The notes below the pieces were generated by a model. That model was not told the DNA's origin. It saw nothing but the letters and a program-made list of their open reading frames with translations, and searched no databases. Of a stretch of 64,000 nucleotides of DNA, positions 13,167 through 54,020 are shown one piece after another (the first letter of the stretch is position 1; each line of letters begins with the position of its first letter). The position numbers were made by a program, and so were the translations under genes. The DNA comes from Dimorphilus gyrociliatus (lineage: Eukaryota; Animalia; Annelida), in contig CAJFCJ010000028.1 of assembly GCA_904063045.1 (NCBI GenBank), forward strand, positions 873,230 to 937,229, written 5' to 3'.

Positions 13167-34518
<21,352 letters not shown>

Positions 34519-36054
34519 CGGTACGTGCGCGGCGTTTAGTGACGCTTCGGGACGTTTTGCGCCGCTTCCTTTTTACCAATCATTCTTTTTTTTAACAATT
34601 CATTTTTCTGGCGCTCTGGCGAGACTATCCTACCAAAATATTATTAAAAGTAATCCTATATTGAGTTTTTACCTCCTTATTTTGTATTCACTATTCCTTA
34701 TGATAAATCGAATCTTCCGTTACCAAATTCCAAAATTCCAGTTTGTTTTCTTCGTTTTAAAACCTTTATAATTAAAATAAAAGAGAAAATACCAAATTTT
34801 TATATTATATTGTTTCTGAGCCGCGCAAAACGCTATGCGAAGAAAGTAGTGCTCTTGCTATTGGTCTGGTTTCTGCATGATAATTTCTCTACAATCTTTC
34901 TGGTTTGTCATTATAGTTGTGTCTGTTGTTTCTTATCTATTTTCTTATTTCTTCTTTTTCTTTTACTGTTTCACAAAGCTTCCCTAATCAAAGACTGTCG
35001 GCTTATATAAAAACGAAATTATTCATTTATAATCTAAATCAACTAGAAAAGTCCTTGAAGATGAGTATATATTGTATATGAACCCTAATAATACTTTCTT
35101 TACATCTACTGACAAGCCAGAGGCATTTTTTGAGCATCTTATAAATTATTTGGCAAGTCTCTTAAGAAGGAGAATAAATCTAAGAATAAAAAAGAAATTT
35201 CTATAAATGTCATTTAATTCTTAAATAAAGTATAAATAATTTATGAACGTCTTATCAAAAGATAAAGGATAGAAAGAAATGAAAGCGGTAGCAATTCATA
35301 AAACACTTTATGTATAGATTTCTTATTTGTTTTTAATTGGCATTTTATTCTTTGTCATAGATTTTATTATTAATTTCAATTTTCTTTTATCTATTATCAG
35401 TCATCTGCCTTTTATTTATCTTAATTAACTACAAGTTATTATTATTTTCGACTTTTTCCCATTGTCTTCGTAAATAATCTTTTAATTAAATAATGAAAAA
35501 GTAAGACAAATCTCCCTTTATCATTTTTAAATATACAATAAATACTCGGATATAAGGCAACGTATAAATGGTAAATGATATCATTAAAAACAAAGGATAT
35601 CATTTTCTTTTTCCCATCTAAATTTCATTCATGTTTTTTATATTAAAATATTAATTAAATACTGAGAAGATAGAAGGAAAGAAATCCGAAAGTCTTTGAT
35701 GAATAATCATTTTAAAAGAAAACTGACTATCAAAATTTTTTGTAACAGTATTCCTACACACCTCCAAATCAAGTAAGCGTTGGAACGGCAAAAAGGAAAA
35801 GAAATGACTTACATACACAGGTGTAACTTTTCAAGATGTAATTTGAACTATATATTATTATTATTCACGTCCCAAGTCTTATTATACTATGCATAATATT
35901 ACAATTTTTGGTTTTTCCTCCAGGATATACTGTATATATATATACAATATATATATATGTATATATATTTCTAACTTTTCTTTACATAACATACAGTCTA
36001 CCTGTAAATACTGTATAAATATACACATAAGTATATATATATTATATACTTATG

Positions 36055-36094
36055 TGCGTGTGTGAGTGTATGTGTGTGTATGCGTGTATGTGTT

Positions 36095-36152
<58 letters not shown>

Positions 36153-36180
36153 TGTGTGTGTGTGTGAGTGTGCGTGCGTT
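36055..36180. repeat. (GT)n compound microsatellite
   Basis: Long GT run with interruptions; it explains the spurious CVCV ORFs. Confidence 0.95.
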
Positions 36181-36434
36181 TATGTATTCTTTAACAAATT
36201 TCTACATGTATGTATGTATATGTATACACTGTAAACAATCAATTAACATTTAAAAAAATAACTAACACAAAGAAAACAAAACAAAAATACATTTAAATCT
36301 AAAATTTCTTACAAAAAATATTATTTAACAGTCTTAAATACTTTAGTTGTATGTAACATAAACACATACTCTCCATTTCTCTCAATCCCCACCTATCTTC
36401 TATCTTTACCAAATAATTTAGAAATCTTTATGTT

Positions 36435-36435
<1 letters not shown>

Positions 36436-36478
<43 letters not shown>

Positions 36479-36552
36479 CCCTCCCCCCGATCTCGTACTT
36501 TCTACCTTTCACTCATGTTCCCTCTCTCTCTCTCTCTCTCGCTCACTCTCTC
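36436..36552. repeat. (CT)n microsatellites
   Basis: Two CT runs separated by a pyrimidine-rich spacer. Confidence 0.9.
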
Positions 36553-38246
36553 CTTCTTCCCATTCTTGTCAATCTAGTCATCTACCAATCTATGTTTTAT
36601 ACTCTACCTATATAAATATTTTTACTGTATTGTATACTGTTTACAATATTTCATTAATATGATTTAAAAGATAAACAGTGTATTAATATACATATATATA
36701 TTTCACTTTCTTATTTTATACTCAGCATCATTGGTGCACATTTTCTTATAAGAAAACTCTATACATTATAAATATATATATATACATGTATAAATGTACG
36801 GTTAAACAATTTCTATACGTTTACTTGCTTTTATAGACCTACCGTTGTTTTTACATGTTCCTGTCTAAATTATTCAATATAAGTTAGGCTATATCATGTT
36901 TTGTTTATTCTAGTATACAAAATTTTGATAATTATTAATAAAAAATAAGAGAGAAAAACTATTAAAGTCTTTGTTTTTCTATATTCAGAATGAAGATTTT
37001 AAATATTCTGTGGGGGAAGAAGGTGAAGGGGGAGCAAGGGGGTTTATCTCGAGTAGGCCGTTTCTCTTTTTATTCAAAATAAACGTTTTTATTCCATAAC
37101 TTTCATCTCCTGGGTTGTGTAGTTTATTATTTTACACAAATTGGATTCAGATAGGCCTAATAAAGTAGTGTAATTTTTCAAATAGATTCTTCAGAATGCA
37201 ATTTAGTGAATTAATTGCATTTTGAAGTAATATGACACGATTAACGAAAACAATTACCGCAAGGGTAAGATACATATGCCCTCATTAGCTTAAGAATGTA
37301 GCTTTAAAAATCTTAAACAAAGCAAAATATACGTAAAAGTTTAAAGAAAATAAAGAGGAAATCATTTACAATCACTAGGATATAATGGGATAAAATAAAG
37401 AAGAAAAAATTGGAAAAAAGGATTTTAGTAGGAGGATTCTTGAAGGCAGTTTCCATTACTAATGCGACAAACATATGCATAGTCATACAAGGCAAACTGT
37501 CACTCGTTATGAGTTATAGATAGCCAAATTTTATATTTTACCACGAGCCAACAAGGATATTTACATAAAAAGAAGTATTTTTAATGATTTTGGACTTGTA
37601 CGTAACTTGATTTAGTTGAATTCATCAAGGAATAAGTATATAAAGATGAATATCAAATGACGAGCGAACAGTTTACATTTAAAGCTATACTTTCGTACTA
37701 TACTAATAAAGTGCCCTAGGCAGCTTCAATAAAAATATTATGCATATTTCTATATAATTTTATTTTAAACTTTACCGCAAAAAGTATATATTCTATATAG
37801 TAAACATAAAAATATATATACGATTATTACAGTACAAAGTGTAAATCATACAGAATTTTGCTCTGTAAACTTAGAATATACTAATAATATATAGTATACT
37901 GTATTTAGTATATACAGTATATATATATATATATATATATGTGATAAAGCTGAAAAAATTTGCAAATTACTGCTAAAAAGAAACCTATAACTCAGCGAAA
38001 TTGCTCGAATCGACAACAACTTTAGATCGTAGTTAATGCGTCTCCTCTCCATTATTAATGTATTCCAGCTATATACAGTTTATGTTTATTATTTTAGTAA
38101 TACATTTAAATAAATAAATTTTATTCTTCATAATATTTCAAAATAAACTTAAAAAAATACAATTAAATGATGAGACTATAAAAATAATAGACGGGGAAGA
38201 TATTTTGAGAGAGTATATGTGTGTGTGTATATATGTGAGACACAGC

Positions 38247-38249
<3 letters not shown>

Positions 38250-38291
<42 letters not shown>
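38250..38291. repeat. (GA)n microsatellite
   Basis: About 20 AG units. Confidence 0.95.
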
Positions 38292-38292
<1 letters not shown>

Positions 38293-38619
38293 AGTATGGA
38301 AATGAGAGGAAGGGAGTTGGATAGAGAGAATGAGAGGGGAAAATGATAAGAAAATGACCAATTTTTTATTGGTCTTTTACGTTTTGACTATGAGTAAATG
38401 GGGACCAATAGAATATGGAGATGTAAGAAATAAAAATTATAGAAATTTATAGAGGAAGCGGGAGAGGAGAGAGAGTAACATGGTACGAGTAGGTGGGAAA
38501 TCATAGTTGAAGGCAGGGAAACAGAGAGAGAAATACGGAAAGTAAACTAGGGATACTTGGTGATAGTAAGAACGAGGAAAAAAACATTTCTAATATAAAT
38601 ACATATATAAGCTGTATGG

Positions 38620-39788
38620 AAAATTCGACTGGCTTTCACGAGAGTAAAGCCTCGGCGTATAATTGAAGTGCTCTAGTTAGCCGAGTGCACTGCCAAACGG
38701 TATTTATCTCAATTTCTGAACGCTTTACTTACGGACGAATCTCGAGAGACGGCCTCGGTCGTTCGCCGAAGCTTTTATCTTATAAATATTATCTTTCCTC
38801 GCCGCACAAAATGTCAGACGCCTCTTCTCTTTAATTATTGAAGAAGCGACCGCGTTACGGACCGTCCAGTAGTCTTTTTCGGACAAAACGAATAAATAAA
38901 AAGTTTATATTTAGAAAGAAACTGTCTTTATTAAAGCTTGAAATAAATCACACTCTAACTCCCTAAAATAATCTGTAAGAAGCGAACGACTCGGACGTTC
39001 CCCTTCCAAATATCTACTTTTTTTATTGACATACAACGGCCAGAAGGCGTCCAACATCTGATATGCGACTTTATAAAGCATAATGAGTACAAAATTTGCA
39101 TTTCTCTTGTTTATCTCGCTCTCTTGTCAAAATTCATTTCTTCTCATACTCAGATTTAACGCCATCTGTAGTTTGAAGATAAACGAGTTATCGGGTCGAG
39201 GTGAAAGAAAGAATGAAAAAATTCCCTAAATGCTTAAATAATTATCTCTTGTAGTTATTTACGTAAATTCCTAGTAGGTCCGATAAAGAGAAATAAAAGC
39301 AATAAAAAGAAAAACAGGCGTTAAGAAAATATCAAGAGAGATCTTTGAAAATCTTCTTGTAAATGGAATAGAAGAAAGTAGAAAAAAAGAAGAGAAGGGG
39401 AAGAGAGTGTCTAAAAGGCGATTTCATTCTATAAATAGCAGTTATCTCAGATGTTTCTTAAATTAATGACTATTGAAAAGCTACCAGCCGTAAAATAAAG
39501 CATTTAACACTGTATCTTCTGAACGACAAACAAATTTACAAAAAAAAAAATAAAAAAAAAAACTACTGCTACGTTCTTCGAAGCGTATCACGACCCTCTT
39601 TCACTCATCGTTGCCTTATCTCAAGTCTTTTGCAGTCTTATAACAGTCGGGTCACGACCGTCGTATGTAAATTAGTCCGCAACCTGCCCGCGTCCCGGCC
39701 TTCGGGACCTGCAGCGCGCCAATCTTATTATGCGCCCAAACCAGGGCGCATGCGCATCTCTATCGTTTCCGTTGCTGCAGTTTTCGAT
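38620..39788 (+). promoter_or_regulatory. CpG-rich putative promoter/5' UTR of iGluR gene 2
   Basis: CpG-rich patches at 38620-38880 and 39640-39790 upstream of exon 1. Confidence 0.35.
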
Positions 39789-41902
39789 ATGGCTACGGCA
39801 GCGGTGACTGCAACCGGCCTTTTCCAGATTATAATATGCTTCTTTTTAATATCAAAAGCTTCAAACTATCGTTATCCTAAAAATGATGTTCAGTTAGGTA
39901 AGTAATTTTTAAAATATGTCCCAAATGTTAATGTTTTCTCAACATTTTCTTATATTTCAACAGGAGTTATTGTTGATGCTAACAAGGAATCTGCAAATAT
40001 TCTCAAAGCTATGCGTTTTGTTATGAACGCAAAAAAAGATCTGTCAATTGGTCATTCAGATATAAAATTCAATGCAAACACTCAAACCCCCATGATAAAC
40101 AACAGCTTCGATTTGATGGCCGCTAGTAAGTAGATGTTCTTACTTTTCCCTTTTTTCGAACGAAAAAATGGTTGAGTGGCACCATCTACCGTCTACTGTT
40201 TTATAGCATATCTAATTTAAGGAAACCGTAAAACTATAAAATCGTTGTCTTTTCCTCGTCCTACCTTTTATTCAATCTCCGTCCATCTCTCTTTCTTTTC
40301 CCCTTCCTTCCACTCAACTTCCTGTTTTATTTACTTTTCTTAAATTGATTATTTCTCTTAAAAAGAAACACTGAACATTAATTAAACACATATTTTATAT
40401 TTAATGTGGATATTCCTGTTTTTTATTCACAGTGTGCAAGCATATGTCTGAAAAAGTTTATACAATTTTTGGAATGAGTACACCATGTTCAATGGACACG
40501 CTACGCTCATTTTCTCGCCAATTTCAAATGCCATATGTTTCTATTGGTACTCCTTTAAAGTCAAATCATCCAAATTCAAATATGGAACCCCCTTTCGAAT
40601 TATTCATCCGACCCCGATACTCAGAAGCAATTGTTGAACTAATAAGACATTATGGTTGGAAAAACGTCTATTACATTCACGATACGAGAGTAGACGGAAT
40701 TTTGCGGGCTGAACAGTTGATTGAGAGTCTTTCCGAGGAAATGGTAACGGTTCATTTCGATATGATCTACGCTAGAGACGGAAGTGACGCTCACGATCAG
40801 ATATCGACAATAGATACAACTAAATCGGAAGACCAAAGAGTCATTATGCTTGATATGAGTAAAGATAACGCCAACGAACTATTCAATAATTTATATACAG
40901 ATGCGAAAAGATTAAAGTTTCACTTTCTAGTTGTTGAATTAGGAATAGTTGAGTTGAACTTTACGGAAAAAGCTGCTGGAGGTCTGAAAGTAACTGGTTT
41001 CCAAATGCTCGGTGCTCCATCTGTAGTTTCTCTTTACGGAGATGGAAAATTCACATCCTCTAATGATATTAATACAACAATTAACAAGTAAATATTTAAG
41101 ATTTATAAACAAACAAACAAACCAGCGGAAGAGTTTGTCACAAGTATTTTTATTTTCTTTTCAGATACCTAAGATTTATCGACGAAGAAGTTGCTGACTT
41201 TAAAAACTATCATCAGTACTTTACACACGACGTCGCTTTAACAATAGACGCCTTAATGGTAATGAAAAAAGCTTGGAAGGCTCTATTAAGTAGAAAAGCT
41301 GATATTGACGATTATAAAGATAGTCAAAATATTCAATGCGATAAGAGCAATAGAAAATGGAAAAAGGGTCCGGAAGTAATGAATGCATTAAAAAGGGTTA
41401 GAATAAAAAATGGCCTTACAGGAAATATTGCTTTTGACGACAATGGTTATAGGAAAGATTTCGTTCTTTTACTATTCGAAGTTGCCTTTAGTAAGGGCCT
41501 TACTCAATTTGGTTACTGGACACCTAAAGTAAAGACAAAAAATGGCAAGACAAGAGGTGGTTTAGGCATAAGGCAACCGGATGAAAAAGAGAGAAATTTA
41601 TATCAATCGGCAATTAAGGATACAAGAATTCGTTCAAATAAGAAGATAAGAAAAGTTACATCAATATTGGTAAGTGTTTCAATTATATTTATTCTTTGAA
41701 ATTTTTCTTATTAATTAATTAAATATAGGATTTCTAAATTATTACTTTTCTAATTATAACTATCTACACTTTATACTTTTTTCTATTTAAATACATTTTA
41801 TACGAAATTGTATCTACACAACAAAATTTCCTTTTAATAAAAAATCAGTACCAATAAACTATTAAACACAGTAAGGGCTGTATGTAATGTATATATACTG
41901 TT

Positions 41903-41939
<37 letters not shown>

Positions 41940-44900
41940 CAATGTATTATGTAGACTGTAAGATTCTTGACTATTTCAAATGAAATTTTTCAAATATTTT
42001 ATAGTCATGTAATAAACTTGGTGTTTTAATTCAAGTCTTATTCTATGAATACTATACTTTATACTGTGTTTATGGTTTATAAATATATATATACTTACAT
42101 ATATATATATATGTATATGTATTTACATATAATATTATTTTGCATCTTTTATAATACTATTCATTACTATATATTGTTTTAATTTTTTACCTTTTTTTAC
42201 TCTTTCTTTACACATTTTTTTAAAAGTAATTCTCTGTTTTCTTATACATTTGTTTAGAATTTTTTACTATCAATTTTCTATTACACAGCACTTTGCCTAT
42301 TTCATTTTACATTCATTCCATTCAAAACAAAAAATAGCTTTTTAAGTAAATTATACAATAAAAAAAATGATAATAAGATTACCAGTTTAACTCTTATCTC
42401 TCTCTCTTTTTTTGTTTATTCTATCAAGTTTACTTATTTTAGCAAATTTCTTTTTGTTTTATTTTGTTATATTTATTTGATTATCCAAAATATAATTAAA
42501 ATTTTCCTCTGTTTATTTTCTGGTTTTTTTATTTTTTTTAAAAAAACAAAAAGAAACCAAAATAAAATATTTAGGATTGAAAGAAATCAACATTTTCTTT
42601 TAGTTTATTCTTTGTTTATAATAGTTCTTTAATGATAAAAGAAAGAGAAAACAAAGATAAATATATTACATTATTTAAAAAGATATTGGTACTGATGTAT
42701 ATTGCACTCAGTTAATCTTTTAGTACTTGATGAAATATGTTTATTTTCACAAGATTAGGTAATATTTATTATTTAAATAAAATAAAAATATATACATATA
42801 TATATAGTATATATATATATATAAAGTATATACATATATATACATATATATATATATATATATTTATACAATTTATATCATACATTCTCTTCTAATCACA
42901 CTTTTTTCGCATGTTTGCGCTTTTGAGCATCTTGTGCATGTATTTCAAATTTTCTTGTACATTTATCAATTTCTCAAGAGCAACTCTTAAAAGCCTATAA
43001 ATATTTTATGAATACTTAAGCTAATAATCAAATCTTTTGCTATATAAAAAAGAAACATTTAAATAATTAAACAGAATTATCTTCTTCTTTTCTTTTCATT
43101 ATTATAAAAACTGCAAATTTTTTTTCAAATACTTCTTTTATTGAAAGTTAAAACTAAACAAGTTGCTCTAAAAAAATCCTTCTCTTCTTCTACGCACCAT
43201 CAATTTCTTCTTCGCAGTTTCTTCTTTTCTCAAACTCTCTCTCTCTCCCTCTCTCTTTGTCTTTCTCTATCACTTTTTCTCTAGCTCTCTTCTTTACATC
43301 TTTTCTCTTTTCTTTAAAAATATTTTTCTATTTAAAAATGAAATTTTAAACAGAAAAATTTTCTGTATCAAAAGCACAACTTGCGAGTGAAAGTGTGATT
43401 GGTGGCCAGAGTGCTTCAAGCCAAAAATATAAAGCAAACATCCACGCAAAATTACTATAACAAACTAAAGAAAAGTAATGTTTTTTGATTTATTCAGAAA
43501 TATTTCACTAACAGTAATAATAGTATTAAAAAAAGACATTTTATGTAACATTTTTCTATAAGATAATTAATTCAAAATTCGGTCACTTATTACTCAGACC
43601 GCTCCATACCTGATGGAAAATAAAAGTACAAACGCAACAGGAAATGATCGTTTTGAAGGTTATTGCAAAGATTTAGCAGATAAAGTGTCTGAAATTCTTA
43701 AATTTGAGTATGAAATTGTACCTGTTCCGGATGGTCAATACGGTAAACTACTAGACAATGGAACTTGGACAGGAATGATGGGGGAACTCGTTAGTAACGT
43801 ACGTAGCACATATTGTTAATTCAAAATAACCAAAAAAATAGAATATTAACAAAACTACACGATATGAAATATTTAAATAGCTTAAGTGAAATAAGAATCT
43901 AATTTTATTCTTGAATTATGTATAAATCATTAGAGATCATTCATTTCCTTCAACTTCTAGTTACTTGACCAAATTACTAACCAAATCTTCTCTTTCTAAA
44001 CATTCCATGAATTTGTTAATTTAAAGGATTTAAAACAAAAAACAAAACTATTAAAGAAACCCTTTTATAACGAGCACCATTGCCACGAATCTCTCGCTGG
44101 AAGCGCGCAAGTTGTGTTCAAGAATACAAAAAAAAAACAAAACGCTTAAACGACTAAATCCTATCATTTTATTTTCAATAAAAATAAAATGCAGACTGCT
44201 CCGTATCTTTTCCGACGAAATACTACTAGTGATGGTCAATCGTTAACGGGAAATAATATGTACGATGGATATTGCGCCGAGTTAGCAAGAATGATTGCAA
44301 ATATTGTTGGATTTGAATACGAAATTGTTCCAGTTCCAGATGGAAATTACGGTAGTCGAAACGAAGACGGTACTTGGAACGGAATGGTTGGAGAGTTAGT
44401 CAGAAATGTAGGCCTATAATTAAATAAAAGTATATTTTATGAGATAAGGAAGCAATCGACCACAAAGGAAAGAAAAAAAAATATCATTATATATAACTCA
44501 GTTTTGTATTTCTTTTTAAATCCACTAGAGAGAAAAAAAAACAGCAAATAAACAATCAAGTAAATAAGCATGCACGCAAACAAACAAACAAACAAACTAA
44601 CTAACCAACAAAAAAGACAAATAAACTCCTTAACTTATTTTCAATAACATGTTTAAACTAGGAACGAACGAGAAAGAAAGCCAACTAAAATAAGAATTTT
44701 AATACGAAAATGAATGCTCTATTAAATAAGTTGTTCATTTCTTCTTTTTTTTTTAAATTTCGTACAGAGAGCAGATTTGGCTATTGCACCTTTAACAATA
44801 ACTGCAGTTAGAGAAGAGGTCGTTGATTTTTCCAAGCCATTTCAGTCTCTTGGAATATCAATCATGATTAAGAAACCTTCAAACGAGAAACCTGGAGTGT

Positions 44901-46155
44901 TTTCTTTTATGTACCCTCTATCTTCGGAGATATGGATGTGTGTTATATTCGCTTATATTGGAGTATCTGTCGTTCTGTTCCTAGTCTCAAGATTTAGCCC
45001 TTTCGAATGGAAAGTGGAAGATTCTAATGAAGGACCAACAGTCACAAACAACTTTACAATATTTAATTCTCTATGGTTCTCTCTAGGGGCCTTTATGCAG
45101 CAAGGATGCGACATTGAACCTAGATCAATATCTGGTAGAATTGTTGGATCTGTTTGGTGGTTTTTCACCCTCATTATAATCTCTAGCTATACGGCTAATT
45201 TAGCTGCATTTCTCACGGTTCAGAGAATGAAAGCACCAATAGAGAGCGCAGATGATTTGGCTAAGCAAACTGAGATAAAATATGGTACAATCGATTCTGG
45301 AACCACTAAGGAATTTTTTAGGACGAGCACCATACCCACTTATGAGAGAATGTGGTCATTTATGTCCTCCCAAAAGCCTTCTGTTTTTGTTAAAGGCAAT
45401 GAGGAAGGTATCAGAAGAGTAAGAAACGAGAATGGCAGATACGCTTTCCTTATTGAATCGACTATTAACGATTATATCAACCAGAGGGAGCCTTGCGATA
45501 CAATGAAGGTAATCAAAAAGTCATGTGACTATTCACTATTGATTATTAAATTATTAAATTTGTTATAGGTTGGGGAAAGTTTAGATTCTAAGGGGTACGG
45601 AATAGCAACTCCTCTGGGATCCGACATGAGAGATCAAATAACGCTGGCTGTTTTACAATTAAGGGAAAATAATGAGCTTCCTGCTTTACAAAAGAGGTGG
45701 TGGTATGAAAAGGGCGACAATTGCGATAAGGAATCGTCTAAGACCAAGCAGGACACAACAAACGCTCTTAAATTACTCAACGTAGCCGGCATATTCTATA
45801 TATTGATAGGAGGACTAATCTTAGCTATTACTATGGCTGTTTTGGAATTCTTCTACAGAGCGAAGGTTGAATCGAAAAAACGAAAGGTTAATCATCACCT
45901 CTATTTAATTAATTGTTTTCATTAAAACAATTGTTTTAAACTTTCCTAAAAGATTTCGTTCAGTGATGCTATCCGACTGAAAGTTCGTATGTCAATGAAG
46001 GGTGGAAGTGAAATAGAAGCTCATACAGTTCAGGAAGTTCCGTCTTCTTCAACGGTATCGTATCATATAAATTTCCTTTAATTATTCAGTTTTCAAATAT
46101 TAATCATAACGTTTAATTCTATTTACAGAAGTACAGAACATATTCGTTTGAATGA
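39789..46155 (+). CDS. AMPA-type ionotropic glutamate receptor subunit, gene 2 (with duplicated exon 5)
   Basis: Exons: 39789-39897 (alternative ATG at 39750), 39964-40125, 40433-41087, 41165-41669, [43598-43798 or 44195-44407], 44768-45508, 45569-45886, 45953-46054, 46129-46155. All junctions are GT-AG and in phase. Motifs: [51 protein letters not shown]. Confidence 0.93.
43598..43798 (+). CDS. iGluR gene 2 exon 5a (alternative S1 N-terminal segment)
   Basis: tactcag|ACC...AAC|gtacgt; 201 nt, phase 0-0; [67 protein letters not shown]. Confidence 0.9.
44195..44407 (+). CDS. iGluR gene 2 exon 5b (alternative S1 N-terminal segment)
   Basis: aaatgcag|ACT...AAT|gtaggc; 213 nt, phase 0-0; [71 protein letters not shown]. 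Confidence 0.9.
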
Positions 46156-48517: not shown

Positions 48518-51500
48518 TTATCTATTGATTTCCTGATGAATCTCTTGAATGATTTTACCAAGATCTTTTACCTCTTTAGTAAGTTCGGTTTGGAATAGAA
48601 AATCTAATCTTCTATGATGTTCAAATTTTCTTATTAGATCTCTAATATTGTTTTTGAATTCGTTTTTACATTCAATTAAATTCAATTCCAATTGGGATAA
48701 TCGTTCTTCAAGATCATCCAACTTGTTCATAGATGTAACGTTAATTTCTTTATGAGTACAATTAAATGCAATCTTCAAGTTTTCTCTTTCCTTATCATTC
48801 GTATTATAATTGCCATTTTCAGCAAACTTCTTCTGAACTATTGATCTCAATCCAAAGAATAGACAATGATTCCACCAAGGATTTGTATTAATATTTTTAC
48901 AATCTATCGCCCAAGAAGTGTATAGATAGACAGTTGGAATTCCTATTCTATCGTACTTGAGCAATTTTCTATCTTTATCCTTAGTTTCTGCTTCTTTTAT
49001 CGAAGGTAATTCTAAATGTTTTTCACGTTGTCTCTCTACACGATTATGGTTATCGTTAGCACTAATCTGTCCATAGGAATCGGTCCTTTTCTTCTTTGCT
49101 TGATGAGCTCTAGTCCTTCTTCTACAACAGCTACTATTGCATCTTATTATAAGTATCACAGTCCTTATTATTCCTCGAAATACGAGTCTGATGAATGAAA
49201 GTATGCCAAATACTACTATTTTCAAATTAAAAGCATCTAAATCCAGTATTAATTCAATTCTTAATCGTTGAACCTCTAAGTGAGCTCGCTCCCTTAATTT
49301 ATTGACATCATCAACAGCTAAGCCAGTCAACAAATTCATAACAATGATAGGCATAAATACTAGAAAAATTGTAAAGACGATATAAGTCGATTCTGGGAAG
49401 TTGACAAGATATTCCTTCCCCGAATCTTGTTTGTAGGCAAAGAACATATCATTAAAATCGAATTCGCCAGTCATCATTACAAATGTTTTAACAATAGATA
49501 TTCCAAAAGATTCAAAGTAGTACTAAAAATAAGAAAAATCATAGAATATTCATTAATATATTTAATAATATAACCATATTTCTTCGAATTTTTACCTGAT
49601 TTTTTAGTAAAATATGAAAACTGAATCCAAAAGCAAAGATAAATAGGAGCAGTACTGAAAAAAATTGAGAAAAAGTCCTCAAAATAGTTGTAACCATAGA
49701 AACGTAAATGCCAATTAAAGGGAATCGTCTTAATTGAAGTATAAGATTAATCCATATAAATAGTAATGTAACTGATCCAACTTCCCATTGCCATGTTTTC
49801 ATCTAAGCAGAATTTAATCGTGACAATTAAAACTAATACAAATAGAGTGAAAAGTGTAAACTTACATAATTACCAGAGCAGGTAGTGTCATAATTAATTA
49901 TTATGAGTAAAGGACAAAGGTATGTAAACCAATCAAGACCATTCTTAATATGTAAATATCTCCATTTTAGTATAATTATTTGAAATATCTTTATAGGCAG
50001 AAAGGAATCTTATAGAAATGTTATATATTAAGAAAATTACGAGCATCTTTCTTACTTCTAGGAAAATTCCTCCCGCTATAAATATATGTAAGAGTATCAA
50101 AACAATTCGAGTTTCATAGGTTTTTTCACAAAATACATTATCTTTTAAAGGTAGACTCTCGTTCTTTCCATCACTTGCATTATTTCTATAAGATGATAAC
50201 AGAATTATACAGTACTATTGTATATACTGTATAAATTATATAGTGAAATTTTTGTGGAGATAAGCCTCATAACTTACTCTTGTGGTTGTGATGAAGATAC
50301 CAATAAAAACTTGGTAAATAATATAGCATAAACAACATAGCATAGTAAAAAAGCAAGAAAGTAATTTAAAGAATATTTCCAAATACATTCCAGATACTTT
50401 TCGGTTACTATATGTCTCATTAGATCTCCTCTTTCATTTTCGGCCTTTGTAGACGAGTATTATTTAAAAAAAACCAGATATACAGTATATTACAGGAATT
50501 TTTATCAACTTACCATTAAATGTAAAGGGTGAGTCAGTCGTTTTGTAGTTTTACCTTTCCTTTCTTGATCATAGAATGAATCAGCAACAAATTCAAAATT
50601 ATATATTTCGTGATGATGATTATTTTTGCATTTACAATCCCTGACGAATATTGGTTCAGTTTTGTAACTCAATTGATCATCAGCGGAATTAACAATGATA
50701 TTATCTCCGTCATTGAATTTATTATATAGAAATCTAATTTCTCTTGTTGGTTCAGAAAATTCAACCTTTCCAAAATCTGAATATTTATGAATCTCTCTTA
50801 ATTCGTTATCTTTCTCCGATGGTTTAATAACGCATTTATCCAAAGCTAAAAGTGCCATTTCTAGACGAAAACAGTTTGGTTATAAATAATTAAATTTCAT
50901 AGATTTTCATTGCTAAATAATAAACCTGGCATTTTTCTAATCAAATTCTTAAAAGGACTATCAATATATGTCTTTTTCATGAATTTAAAGTAAACTGCTT
51001 CCCTGTTATAGCAATGCCTCAGTAAGTTTGACCATTTATTAGATTCTAATAGCAGCAGTACATCAGCTCTTTAAATCATTGGAAAAGAAGTTATTTAAAA
51101 TAAATAGACAAAGTAATTTTAAAAGCTAAACATACCTCATTCCCATATCTATTGCGTAATCTAAAACGTTTCTTTTATCATCTCTACTTATCATACCATC
51201 AATATGTATATCGTAGTTCAAAAGAGTTTCAAGGACTTTTCTATGTCCTCTCGTTATGGCCTCGTAAGCAGCTTTTGTGCCCCATCCTTGCTGGAAAACC
51301 CAATATTCTTTGATGATCAAATTACTTTTAAAATCAACTTAAATAAAAAAATTATTACACTTTTGATTTCCTTAAATAATTCTCTCTCGCTGTCACCTAT
51401 TTGGAAAAATCATTTGATCACTTACAGAGAAATTTATGAGAATATAGTACAGTATATAAAACCTACATAATCTTTCTTCGTCACTCCTATCCTTCTTTTG

Positions 51501-54020
51501 ATGAAAATTTTTCTCCTCAGATTTGATTGAGAATATTATTTCAAGTAGATAATCCAATATATCATGATTACCTTCCAAAATAGCCCGATCGATGGGCAAA
51601 ACTCTTTTACTATCGGGAATTAGAAGTAACGAACATATCTTGCTGGCGTCCAATTTGCAAAATAGTTCTTTACATGCACTGCAAAAAATAAACTATATTG
51701 TAATAGTTTTATATTTTAGATAACTTACTTAACGTTGTTATTGCATACAGCAATATATAAAGGTGTTTCACCCTTATTATTCCTCACCAAATACCTGGCA
51801 TTGCAGTTCAACAACAACTAAAGTGAGAAAATTTTACAGAGTATTTTATATATGTATTTTCTTATATTAAATATTTACCTTTGTATATAAATGATTATGA
51901 TTTCTGGCCGCAATATGAATAGGTTTCTCTTCCTTACTATCACTATAATTTAAAATATCGTCAAAATTTTCAATAGTATCATAATATTCTTTGGAGAGCA
52001 ATATCTAATCGGAAAAGTCGAGTTTCATTAGATTTCTTTTTATGGGTTTACTTGTTATTGCAATAAATATTATGTTGATCGTATGGTAAGCTAACCTGGG
52101 CTATGTCGATTAAATTATCATCAATGGCTCTAAAAACTACAAAAGGTTCTGGGAACTTTCTAAATTTCTTTAAATAGAATGGTAAAATCTTCTTAAGGAT
52201 AGTTGGTTCGTCGTTAATTACGCAGTAATTAACGGGACTTTTATAACCTTTTGGTAAATATTCTAACAATGGTATTTTATTTTCTCGAATGTAGACTAGC
52301 GTATCTTTTTTGAGTGCATCATTCATTAGCGTAAGAAAAATATCTGATCTAAGAAAAGAAAAAAAAGTCCAATAGAGCATTGATTATATTCAATTATCGC
52401 TTACTCATTTTCAGCAAGAAATTCAATCAAAATCGAATTTTTGTTACAAATTGCCAAGTGAATAATATTTTGATCGTTTTCATCATAAACCTTTACTTTT
52501 TCAAATATTTCTGTGTATTTTTTAAAAGGGGTAATGTAAAGCTAATAAAAGAATAAGATCACGAATGATAAGTTTCCTTACTAAATGAATATTTTTCTTT
52601 ATAAGCTCTAAAAAACGTTTTAATTGCAGCAAGATTTTTTACTTCCACTAAAGACAGTAGTAAAGGATATTTATCCCTGGGAATAAATTGATTTTCTATA
52701 ATGAATAAATGAATAGATATGTTATAGACAAACATAAAGTCTCGTTTAGTATTCAGGCTTACCTTCTTTAAGTAAAAACTTTAAAAGATCTTTATCAAAC
52801 AAATTATAATGAATTATTCTCTTTCCTTCTTGATTTTGTATCTTATACAACTGGAAACAAGATAAAATAGATAAAAGATATTACAAGGTATTATACAGTT
52901 GAAGAAAAACCTGAATACTCTCTTTCTCTGATAGCATCTTCATTAAATACTTCATTTTATGGATTTCTCTTTTGCTAATACTCTCATTTTTATAATGAAA
53001 AGGTGTTGAATGAGTTTCATCCGTTATCACTTTTAATATATACTCTGTATCATTATCTTTAATCTGTTCAAACAGATATTTTGAAACTTGTATTTGTAAG
53101 TTGCTTAATGCTTGAGATAAGTATGTTCTTCCTGAAGAATTTCGGCTCTATAATGAAAGTCAAAATATTCCAAAGTAAGGAACATTATTTCGTAGATTAT
53201 TGATGAAGAGCACTTACTAGCCAACTAAAATTATCATAATGTTCAGATTTCTTAATAAATGAAACTAAATTTTTAATTACACGCCAATGACATCTGCTAT
53301 CAATAGCCGCAAAGAGTATTCTTTCCTTAGACTTTCCAGTCCCATCTATTTTGAACATGTGATCTAGAAAGAATTCTAGAAACTCCATTGAATCGTCTTT
53401 ATTGTGGTTTTCATCTGAAATATTTTAATATAGTATTTAAAAGTTTTATTTAAAACATAACCTTCTCCTACCTTCCGTTGTTATTGTACTAGTCAAATCA
53501 GGATAGCCTTCAAGATCAATCTATTCAGTTGAACACGTTATAAATCTATACACAAGAAACAAACAAAAGTAAAACAAACATTATTTTGCCCTAAACTTCT
53601 AAAATAATAGGAAACTGGTAAGTTATTTTGAGAATCCCTTTCATAGATACCTGAAAATCGTAAGTAAGGTAACGTAGAGTAACGTTGATTTATAAATGAA
53701 ATATTATACGAACGAGCTCCATATGAAAATAGAATTTTTAATAATGAAAGACTATTTTTTGTTGCGGCATAATGCAGTAAACAACGTCCGTAATCGTCTC
53801 GTTTTGTAAGCAAATTATCTAAATCCCATGAATTAATATTTTCCAATTCTTTAATAAGAGAACCTTCTTGATCTTTATCATCTTTAGACCATAGATGAAC
53901 CAACTGGTTATTTTTTAAAAAAAAAATCATGCATTCCACACTAAAATTTAATTAGTTAATTTATCGAACCTCAAAAACTCTATGCTCTATATCTGTAAAT
54001 TCGACAAGAGAAGAGTTCAT
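48518..54020 (-). CDS. TRPA-like ankyrin-repeat cation channel, copy A (~22 exons, roughly 1,350-1,400 aa)
   Basis: First exon 54020-53970 ([17 protein letters not shown]), last exon 49522-48518. Ankyrin motifs ([24 protein letters not shown]), [47 protein letters not shown], pore MMTGEFDF, S6/TRP-like [18 protein letters not shown]-terminal coiled coil. All junctions I traced are GT-AG and in phase. Confidence 0.9.

Follow-up and report, generated by a model that had tools for sequence, protein, structure and literature searches.

Tandem exons and competing RNA pairings in other systems

Flip and flop, the alternative exons of vertebrate GRIA1-4, are the textbook doubling of the vertebrate AMPA receptor repertoire and are regarded as a vertebrate invention. 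They are tandem homologous exons that arose by intragenic duplication, are included one at a time, and encode the last part of S2, on the rear side of the receptor's ligand-binding domain (LBD), before M4; the pocket stays the same and the domain surface differs. PMC13520880, citing Chen et al. 2006, places their origin in early vertebrates, and this 2026 survey of invertebrate AMPA receptors states that alternative splicing in the latter "remains to be studied". Tandem alternative exons also diversify the extracellular LBD of other transmitter-gated channels, insect GluCl (exon 3) and nAChR alpha6, as described in excerpts of PMC13512814 and PMC1919356; these are Cys-loop receptors, with a fold unrelated to that of ionotropic glutamate receptors (iGluRs), to which the gene described here belongs.

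In docking-site/selector systems (insect Dscam exon 6, 14-3-3zeta, srp and MRP1), conserved intronic elements compete for one shared element, which lies at an end of the cluster. In one of the pairings the unwanted exon is looped out and the weak acceptor of the chosen exon is drawn close, and the splice sites of the alternative exons are weaker than those of the constitutive exons beside them (PMC6071210). The same source sets out the Ivanov-Pervouchine model, in which two elements compete for a shared third and one of the pairings loops out the first exon; such competing arms are predicted to arise when an exon is duplicated together with one arm of an intronic stem-loop. In human ATE1, according to an excerpt of PMC7797038, two intronic elements (R1 and R4) compete for one partner (R3) and set the ratio of the exon 7a and 7b isoforms; ultra-long-range pairing is involved as well, and the pairings were validated by mutagenesis.

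The locus described here lies in a stretch of 64,000 nt (the window) from Dimorphilus gyrociliatus, a miniature marine annelid with a 74 Mb genome. It shares with flip/flop an AMPA-type gene and two tandem homologous LBD exons, designated 5a and 5b, derived from an intragenic duplication, and we infer that here too one exon is included at a time. Judged by sequence, the worm pair is flip/flop-like, but at a different site of the LBD, namely S1 (GluA2 402-470), in lobe D1. Its members have drifted much further apart than flip and flop, to an identity of 54% in protein (tblastn E 1e-22), and its origin is independent of theirs, flip/flop being placed in early vertebrates by PMC13520880. Our main reading, to which we give a probability of about two in three, is that 5a and 5b are both functional and used one at a time, the choice being made at least partly by an intronic three-element RNA switch.

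The receptor gene and its exons 5a and 5b

The 952-aa protein annotated for the gene (DgyrCDS13979) mapped exactly onto the window, with the domain order ATD - S1 - M1-M3 - S2 - M4. Pfam families ANF_receptor, Lig_chan-Glu_bd and Lig_chan were found on successive exons, and the same families are recorded for the full-length protein. The best 60 solved-structure matches to this protein were all GluA1-4 (E 1e-214 to 1e-202), and exon 6 shared 72-75% identity with vertebrate GluA2-4 versus only 50-58% with kainate-type matches; exon 5a on its own scored slightly better against GluK1. The glutamate-binding residues, GluA2 Y450, P478, T480, R485 and E705 by the usual numbering and a count along mammalian GluA2, were all present, and the pore Q/R site was Q, in FMQQGC. 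By these comparisons the product is an AMPA-type subunit, nearer to GluA than to the kainate, NMDA and delta classes.

Table 1. Features of the receptor gene, numbered from the first letter of the window
Feature	Position	Strand	Remarks
Whole gene, AMPA-type iGluR DgyrCDS13979 (CAD5125768.1, 952 aa)	39750..46155	+	9 annotated coding exons
Exon 4, constitutive (end of amino-terminal domain and linker)	41166..41669	+	ends KVTSIL; donor GTAAGT
Block A	42859..42957	+	91% identical to relative; 51-nt invariant core; complementary to B
Block B, shared partner and candidate docking site	43341..43417	+	89% identical to relative; single occurrence in the window
Exon 5a	43598..43798	+	67 codons, phase 0-0; copy in the published model; donor GTACGT
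Block C, candidate selector	44071..44132	+	lies 62 nt upstream of the acceptor of 5b; three stems with B kept in relative
Exon 5b	44195..44407	+	71 codons, phase 0-0; unannotated; weak polypyrimidine tract, donor GTAGGC
Exon 6, constitutive (end of S1, M1-M3, start of S2)	44768..45508	+	starts RADLAIAP; strong polypyrimidine tract

A reading of the window made from the sequence alone (the sequence-only reading) had proposed the tandem pair, and its account of the anatomy held throughout. Translation confirmed that both exons are stop-free, have intact AG/GT and phase 0-0, start with TAPYL and end with GELVxN, and that they lie between unique exons with the ends given in Table 1; the sequons it had listed (NKS, NAT and NGT in 5a, NTT in 5b) are present. 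The only other homologue in the window is one exon of neighbouring gene 1 (27329-27538), a gene for which the same reading had noted a single copy. Both 5a and 5b matched PF10613 at positions 11-76, and the next exon resumed at 78. Exon 5b is absent from the public annotation of the genome, the sole gene model of which uses 5a.

The introns around the cluster measured 1928, 396 (the spacer between 5a and 5b, of the length previously reported) and 360 nt, and the remaining introns of the gene 60-310 nt. The median intron of this genome is 66 nt (PMC7854359). The pyrimidine content of the acceptor tract was 0.40-0.50 for 5b versus 0.75-0.80 for exon 6, and the donors of 5a and 5b were both weaker than that of exon 4.

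Selection on both copies and the segment they encode

For comparison, a genomic contig of a close relative (L001; dS ~1) was used. When the two exons were sought there, they were found in tandem, with AG/GT intact and no frameshifts; 5b had no indel relative to the relative, and 5a had one in-frame single-codon indel. At a between-species dS of about 0.6-1.2 for these exons, 5a had a dN/dS (Nei-Gojobori) of 0.23 (Fisher p 4e-5) and 5b one of 0.13 (Fisher p 4e-9), both well below 1, and neither copy is evolving neutrally. Identity was 78-80% between orthologues versus 54-60% between paralogues, and in the tree the 5a clade had a support of 100/99 and the 5b clade 95/84. The orthologues being this similar, the duplication is, on the sequence comparison, old and both copies are under purifying selection; as to its age, the tree of 70 residues resolves only the two orthologue pairs. 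Metagenome contigs were scanned for further close relatives: an exact-pattern search using the core sequence of block B gave no match, and a protein-guided one gave 80 iGluR loci with no close relative among them, which served solely as a control set.

That the duplication might be an artefact of assembly, such as a collapsed or duplicated haplotype, was considered, and such an artefact does occur elsewhere: the only adjacent tandem case among the other iGluR loci and proteins compared was a bat GluA2 gene model carrying two identical copies of the exon. The worm copies, on the other hand, are only 54% identical in protein and saturated at synonymous sites, and a second species, assembled independently, has the same tandem layout. 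This explanation is effectively refuted by the divergence and by the tandem pair of the relative.

Searches for products covered a collection of 5.8 billion proteins. With both exons as query (fragments of 39-124 aa), no fragment containing 5b was found; with exon 6 as query (141-450 aa), no spliced fragment was found, nor with a profile of full-length size (318-1011 aa), although there vertebrate GluA2 swamped the matches and the outcome carries no weight. The members of the cluster, and the places encoding the annotated protein, likewise gave no spliced fragment and consisted only of ORFs in genomic sequence from one relative plus the gene model at NCBI. A disused relic of the duplication would account for a copy of 5b that is unannotated, has a weak polypyrimidine tract and donor, and yielded no product in the databases searched. 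However, this exon keeps 71 codons, AG/GT and an open frame, with dN/dS of 0.13 between introns that are 38-54% identical and rich in indels, and a random 71-codon stretch of this AT-rich composition would be free of stops in only about 0.2% of cases, as estimated from base counts. We therefore regard a relic as very unlikely, and both exons as functional.

Counted along mammalian GluA2, the duplicated segment corresponds to E402-G470, and it includes, as the sequence-only reading had stated, the equivalents of E402, Y405 and Y450, residue numbers that we take from the usual GluA2 numbering. These three residues are identical between 5a and 5b. The 13 fixed differences between the exons lie on the surface of the upper lobe, and an N-glycosylation site is swapped in position between them; among the sequons, the relative keeps only NGT in 5a and the N-x-S/T of loop 1 in 5b. 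Since the pocket residues are the same, the exon swap as judged from the sequence would alter the upper-lobe surface (loops 1 and 2, the helix ends and the glycans) and leave the direct contacts with glutamate as they are. Of the earlier claim that one gene makes two receptors with different upper lobes, the existence of two functional alternative exons is favoured by selection and by the tandem pair of the relative, with the difference confined to the surface and the pocket contacts unchanged. The first cluster of differences adjoins GluA2 Y424, which we take to line the modulator pocket of the dimer interface; a literature search for this role of Y424 returned no confirmation, and no conclusion here depends on it.

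Inclusion of both exons in one mRNA, constitutively or often, would put the S1 segment into the receptor twice. The length of each exon is divisible by three, which would keep the frame, and purifying selection fits co-inclusion as well as alternation. The two exons encode the same structural segment, so that joint inclusion would duplicate half of lobe D1: each copy is the same D1 core (PF10613 11-76), and a second would add about 70 residues without a place in the fold. In addition, 5b is omitted from the published model, and two diverged copies were found in 0 of 44 other iGluR loci and in no fetched iGluR protein carrying the segment. Co-inclusion is very improbable, and the gene can very probably make two receptor versions, one exon at a time, as far as the sequence allows this to be read.

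Intronic blocks and the choice of exon

Three blocks in the introns around 5a (A, B and C, Table 1) were 81-91% identical to the relative, versus 38-54% with many indels for the remaining intron. Both A and C are similar to B in reverse complement (p<0.001 for each), and they would pair with overlapping bases of it (approximately 43368-43416) in both species; a direct similarity between A and C was not significant (p 0.14), and a common origin of these two blocks is not supported. For the B-C duplex the predicted energies were -52.8 (window) and -45.8 kcal/mol (relative), compared with -26.5 +/- 3.8 for shuffled sequences, and that of A-B was -48.0 and -40.7 kcal/mol, respectively; the Z for pairing versus shuffles was about -7. 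With B as probe over 12 kb, C and A were the two best partners, likewise in the relative, against a background of -18.9 +/- 5.6 and a next-best partner of -34.9. When 1.36 kb of the pre-mRNA was folded, the minimum-energy structure contained B-C, the blocking of C gave A-B, and the predicted ensemble contained both pairings in both species. The B-C pairing places 5a in a predicted loop of about 650 nt, and the A-B pairing encloses no exon. For a further pairing, one that would enclose 5b in a loop, no conserved partner was found for the block beside the 5b donor, nor any in the intron downstream of 5b. Scanned against Rfam, the introns gave TA-repeat noise only, with no match of A, B or C to a known RNA family. 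Predicted long-range duplexes of this kind may not form in vivo.

As modelled, the layout of the three blocks is that of a docking-site/selector switch, and it supplies a concrete candidate, with competing duplexes, for the active mechanism that the sequence-only reading had predicted. As in the insect systems, splice sites are weaker in the alternative exons than in the constitutive ones on either side, and the B-C pairing would loop out one exon and draw the weak acceptor of the other close. The worm arrangement differs in that B sits between its partners, in that A-B encloses no exon, in its annelid host, and in that pairing is predicted. With ATE1 the worm case shares a cluster of two exons and two intronic elements that would compete for one partner; it concerns a different gene and phylum, and the ATE1 pairing was validated by mutagenesis. 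For the Ivanov-Pervouchine model, the order A-B-exon-C-exon would require the loss of a second copy of B.

The same exons could be mutually exclusive with tissue-specific splicing proteins and the strength of the splice sites deciding between them on their own, in which case A, B and C would be conserved for another reason, for instance as a transcriptional enhancer, a platform for proteins or an unrecognised ncRNA. In the paired arms the two species compared, the only ones available, do not differ, and hence the arms hold no compensatory changes that would show selection on pairing; the sole change in a stem is a shift by one base of the third, 6-bp stem, with matched changes in the size of the internal loops (judged by eye). 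Block A is also conserved in its 3' half, which had no conserved RNA partner and holds two conserved GCAUG motifs (at 42909 and 42936) of a kind typical of protein binding. Large introns in this genome, moreover, often hold open-chromatin regulatory regions (PMC7854359). Set against this are the facts that the three best-conserved blocks are mutual best partners among about 1,200 windows in both species, and that the two pairings overlap on B, a coincidence that is hard to explain without RNA pairing. Choice by proteins and splice sites alone is therefore considered unlikely, though it deserves more weight than a relic or co-inclusion, and we prefer the RNA switch.

On the main reading, 5a and 5b arose when the exon for GluA2 E402-G470, a portion of lobe D1 (the upper one), was duplicated in tandem long ago. 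The A-B hairpin would leave 5a exposed, leading to the 5a isoform, and would probably be the default state because A and B are transcribed first. Pairing of B with C would loop out 5a and bring the donor of exon 4 near the weak 5b acceptor, leading to the 5b isoform. B-C could be favoured by a protein occupying block A; the two conserved pentamers resemble Rbfox-type sites, and they are the only basis of the Rbfox suggestion. As for the skipping of 5b when 5a is used, the weak 5b acceptor was the only explanation found. The fullest version, in which the annelid has its own two-isoform LBD switch independent of flip/flop, with A-B giving 5a, B-C giving 5b and a neuronal Rbfox-type GCAUG-binding protein masking A, is put forward tentatively and is rather doubtful as a whole. 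We know of no earlier docking/selector system in any lophotrochozoan or in any glutamate receptor gene.

The single gene would thus encode two AMPA-type subunits that share their glutamate contacts and differ at 13 surface positions and in an N-glycan site. If the fullest version is true, the D1 surface and the relocated glycan would make the isoforms differ in their gating, assembly or binding of partners. The pair is a natural experiment on the S1 face of lobe D1, with the contacts held constant while the surface positions and the glycan site vary. The candidate RNA switch is small and clearly bounded, three blocks within 1.3 kb, and lies outside insects and mammals. The locus suggests that a miniature annelid reached the end served by flip/flop via a different exon of the same domain.

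Exon pair and host gene

Based on the closest 90% cluster members, the exon pair was assigned to DgyrCDS13979 (protein CAD5125768.1, 952 aa, Dimorphilus gyrociliatus, contig CAJFCJ010000028.1). The best relatives of its conserved core exon were AMPA-type receptors from many phyla, with at most 75% identity, and the full protein's 60 best matches among solved structures were GluA1-4 without exception. The published protein mapped onto the window as nine coding exons, with annotated introns of, in order, 66, 310, 77, 1928, 969, 60, 66 and 74 nt. It runs from KVTSIL (end of exon 4) through exon 5a to RADLAIAP (start of exon 6); the annotation thus uses 5a and leaves out 5b, which lies inside the 969-nt intron. 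Compared with the genome's median intron of 66 nt (PMC7854359), those flanking 5a and 5b are unusually long.

The coordinates, translation and splice dinucleotides of the two stop-free exons, which encode part of S1 in the ligand-binding domain, were all as the sequence-only reading had described them. They are separated by a 396-nt spacer and shared 54% identity (E 1e-22) when either peptide was compared with the whole window by tblastn; the sole further match was one exon of the neighbouring paralogous gene (gene 1), in agreement with the single copy claimed for it. Positions 11-76 of Pfam PF10613 were matched by 5a and 5b alike, and exon 6 picked up the family at position 78. Because they cover the same part of the domain and the next exon resumes behind it, 5a and 5b are, as judged from sequence, alternative versions of a single structural segment, not consecutive pieces. 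Their splice signals were weaker than those of the neighbouring exons: the acceptor tract was 40-50% pyrimidine for 5b versus 75-80% for exon 6, and the donors were GTACGT (5a), GTAGGC (5b) and GTAAGT (exon 4).

Features of the exon pair, its introns and its surroundings
Feature	Position	Strand	Description
Exon 5a	43598-43798	+	67 residues, open frame, starts TAPYL, ends GELVxN, AG before, GT after
Exon 5b	44195-44407	+	71 residues, open frame, starts TAPYL, ends GELVxN, AG before, GT after
Block A	42859-42957	+	Conserved vs L001 (contig of a close relative), 51-nt invariant core
Block A, 3' half	42922-42957		Invariant between two species, contains UGCAUG
Block B	43341-43417	+	Conserved vs L001, between A and exon 5a
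Block C	44071-44132	+	Conserved vs L001, 62 nt upstream of 5b
First 23 nt after 5b	44408-44430		87% conserved
Gene 1	24230-33315	+	Second AMPA-type iGluR, head-to-tail upstream of DgyrCDS13979 (gene 2)
Gene 1 S1 exon	27329-27538		Single
Gene 1 M1-S2 region	28088-28486, 29785-30012, 32815-33315		Three exons; one fused exon in gene 2
Microsatellites	36052-36615, 38176-38361		Long (TG)n and (GA/CT)n tracts in the intergenic stretch separating the receptor genes
Downstream gene	48518-52000	-	Ion_trans C-terminal pore segment, then long coiled tail; frames further upstream ankyrin-like by eye; would suggest a TRP-type channel

Conservation of both exons in a relative

In L001, a 3.9 kb Logan contig (run SRR23372229), two short ORFs matched the exon peptides; the contig is genomic and represents the same gene with introns. 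The orthologues of 5a (68 codons) and 5b (71 codons) lay in tandem in the same order, with AG and GT intact at each. An assembly artefact was ruled out, both copies being kept in L001 in frame and with intact splice sites. Between the window and L001, dN/dS, proposed earlier as a check, was 0.23 for 5a (dS 0.61, Fisher p 4e-5) and 0.13 for 5b (dS 1.04, Fisher p 4e-9), and exon 6 gave 0.02 (dS 1.24). The dS of 5a (L001 nt 1063-1266) was thus about half that of 5b and exon 6, which could reflect extra synonymous-site constraint (from splicing enhancers, for example, or an RNA structure) or, with 67 codons, may simply be sampling noise. Protein identity was 78% to 80% between orthologous copies and 54% to 60% between paralogous ones; in the tree, the 5a pair (100/99) and the 5b pair (95/84) each formed a clade, and the deeper placement of the duplication was not resolved.

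No spliced product containing 5b, containing either 5a junction or showing exclusivity was found in the public collections searched. That 5b is a dead relic of the duplication is very unlikely, since the surrounding introns shared 38% to 54% identity with many indels, a divergence at which an unused 213-nt exon would lose frame, length and splice sites, whereas in L001 5b is still in frame, of the same length and flanked by intact splice sites. Retention of both copies in the relative supports the alternative-exon interpretation of the sequence-only reading.

Predicted competing intronic pairings and a candidate switch

Against the poorly conserved introns, three stretches (blocks A, B and C) stood out. 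Block B occurs once in the window, and its reverse complement was resembled by A and by C (p<0.001 each). The predicted B-C duplex comprised three stems totalling about 40 bp, with energies of -52.8 kcal/mol (window) and -45.8 kcal/mol (L001), versus -26.5 +/- 3.8 kcal/mol in a dinucleotide-shuffle control; the predicted A-B duplex had -48.0 and -40.7 kcal/mol, respectively. In a scan of B against 12 kb of the window, C and A took the top two ranks, far ahead of the rest (background -18.9 +/- 5.6, next-best partner -34.9), as they were in L001. Since A and C pair with overlapping bases of B, the A-B and B-C pairings are mutually exclusive. Folding of the whole 1.36 kb segment gave a minimum-energy structure with B-C, and with A-B once C was blocked; the predicted ensemble held both, in the window and in L001. 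With B-C formed, a loop of about 650 nt would contain 5a, splice sites included; A-B would enclose no exon. The stems were invariant between the two species compared, with no covariation, and no Rfam family matched the introns around 5a and 5b. Conservation downstream of 5b extended well past the usual donor consensus; this stretch had no clear pairing partner, with block B pairing only weakly (about -12 kcal/mol).

The active mechanism predicted earlier thus has a candidate in these modelled duplexes. In docking-site/selector control, two elements compete for a shared element and one pairing loops out the first exon, a competition predicted to arise when an exon is duplicated in tandem along with a single intronic-stem arm (PMC6071210); similarly, A and C would compete for B, and B-C would loop out 5a. 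By default A and B, transcribed first, would pair, 5a would be included and 5b, with its weak acceptor, skipped, giving the annotated isoform; the weak acceptor is the only explanation at hand for this skipping. Were A kept unavailable, B would pair with C once C is made, looping out 5a and bringing the exon 4 donor to 5b. GCAUG occurs just twice in the introns of L001, both times within block A, versus 0.7 expected from composition in the 3.1 kb region, and both motifs are conserved in the window; the 3' half of block A had no conserved RNA partner and may be a protein-binding site. Given these features, an Rbfox-type, GCAUG-binding protein on block A could, speculatively, be the trigger.

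Isoform differences and occurrence among iGluRs

Counted along GluA2, the segment corresponds to E402-G470. It had been said to carry the equivalents of E402, Y405 and Y450 of the glutamate pocket; the positions do lie within it and are identical between 5a and 5b, the E402 equivalent being a threonine in both. Thirteen positions were fixed within each orthologue pair yet different between pairs, and clustered at GluA2 419-422 (DRFE in 5a, NMYD in 5b), 436-437, 452-456 (the loop just after Y450), 461 and 469; loop 1 was variable in both exons. The sequon sites differ between the exons, as noted earlier, and one sequon per isoform is conserved in L001: for 5a this is the loop-2 NGT, for 5b the N-x-S/T of loop 1. 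With the pocket equivalents the same and the differences elsewhere, the switch is therefore predicted to change the surface of the upper lobe (D1) and the glycan pattern, not direct glutamate contacts.

One copy each was observed in 44 other iGluR loci with this exon region (metagenome contigs, some short). In a set of about 450 fetched iGluR proteins, S1 copies stood side by side in just one, a bat GluA2 model with two identical copies (P0339, Pteropus alecto 'Glutamate receptor 2', 948 aa, residues 373-507), which almost certainly reflects an error of assembly or annotation; read from this model, mammalian S1 exon boundaries are the same as here (ESPYV to ELVYG). Two distant S1 segments were observed in proteins P0334 (Amblyomma), P0335 (Camelus), P0336 (Tegillarca) and P0138, which look like fused tandem genes. 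The literature search returned no paper on alternative S1 exons in any iGluR, and work from 2026 on the AMPA receptors of invertebrates describes their splicing as unstudied (PMC13520880). Like vertebrate flip/flop, the DgyrCDS13979 pair is an AMPA-receptor exon pair, although at a different site in the receptor; on present sequence evidence, it is a flip/flop-like pair of an invertebrate receptor, accompanied by a well-defined candidate for an RNA switch.
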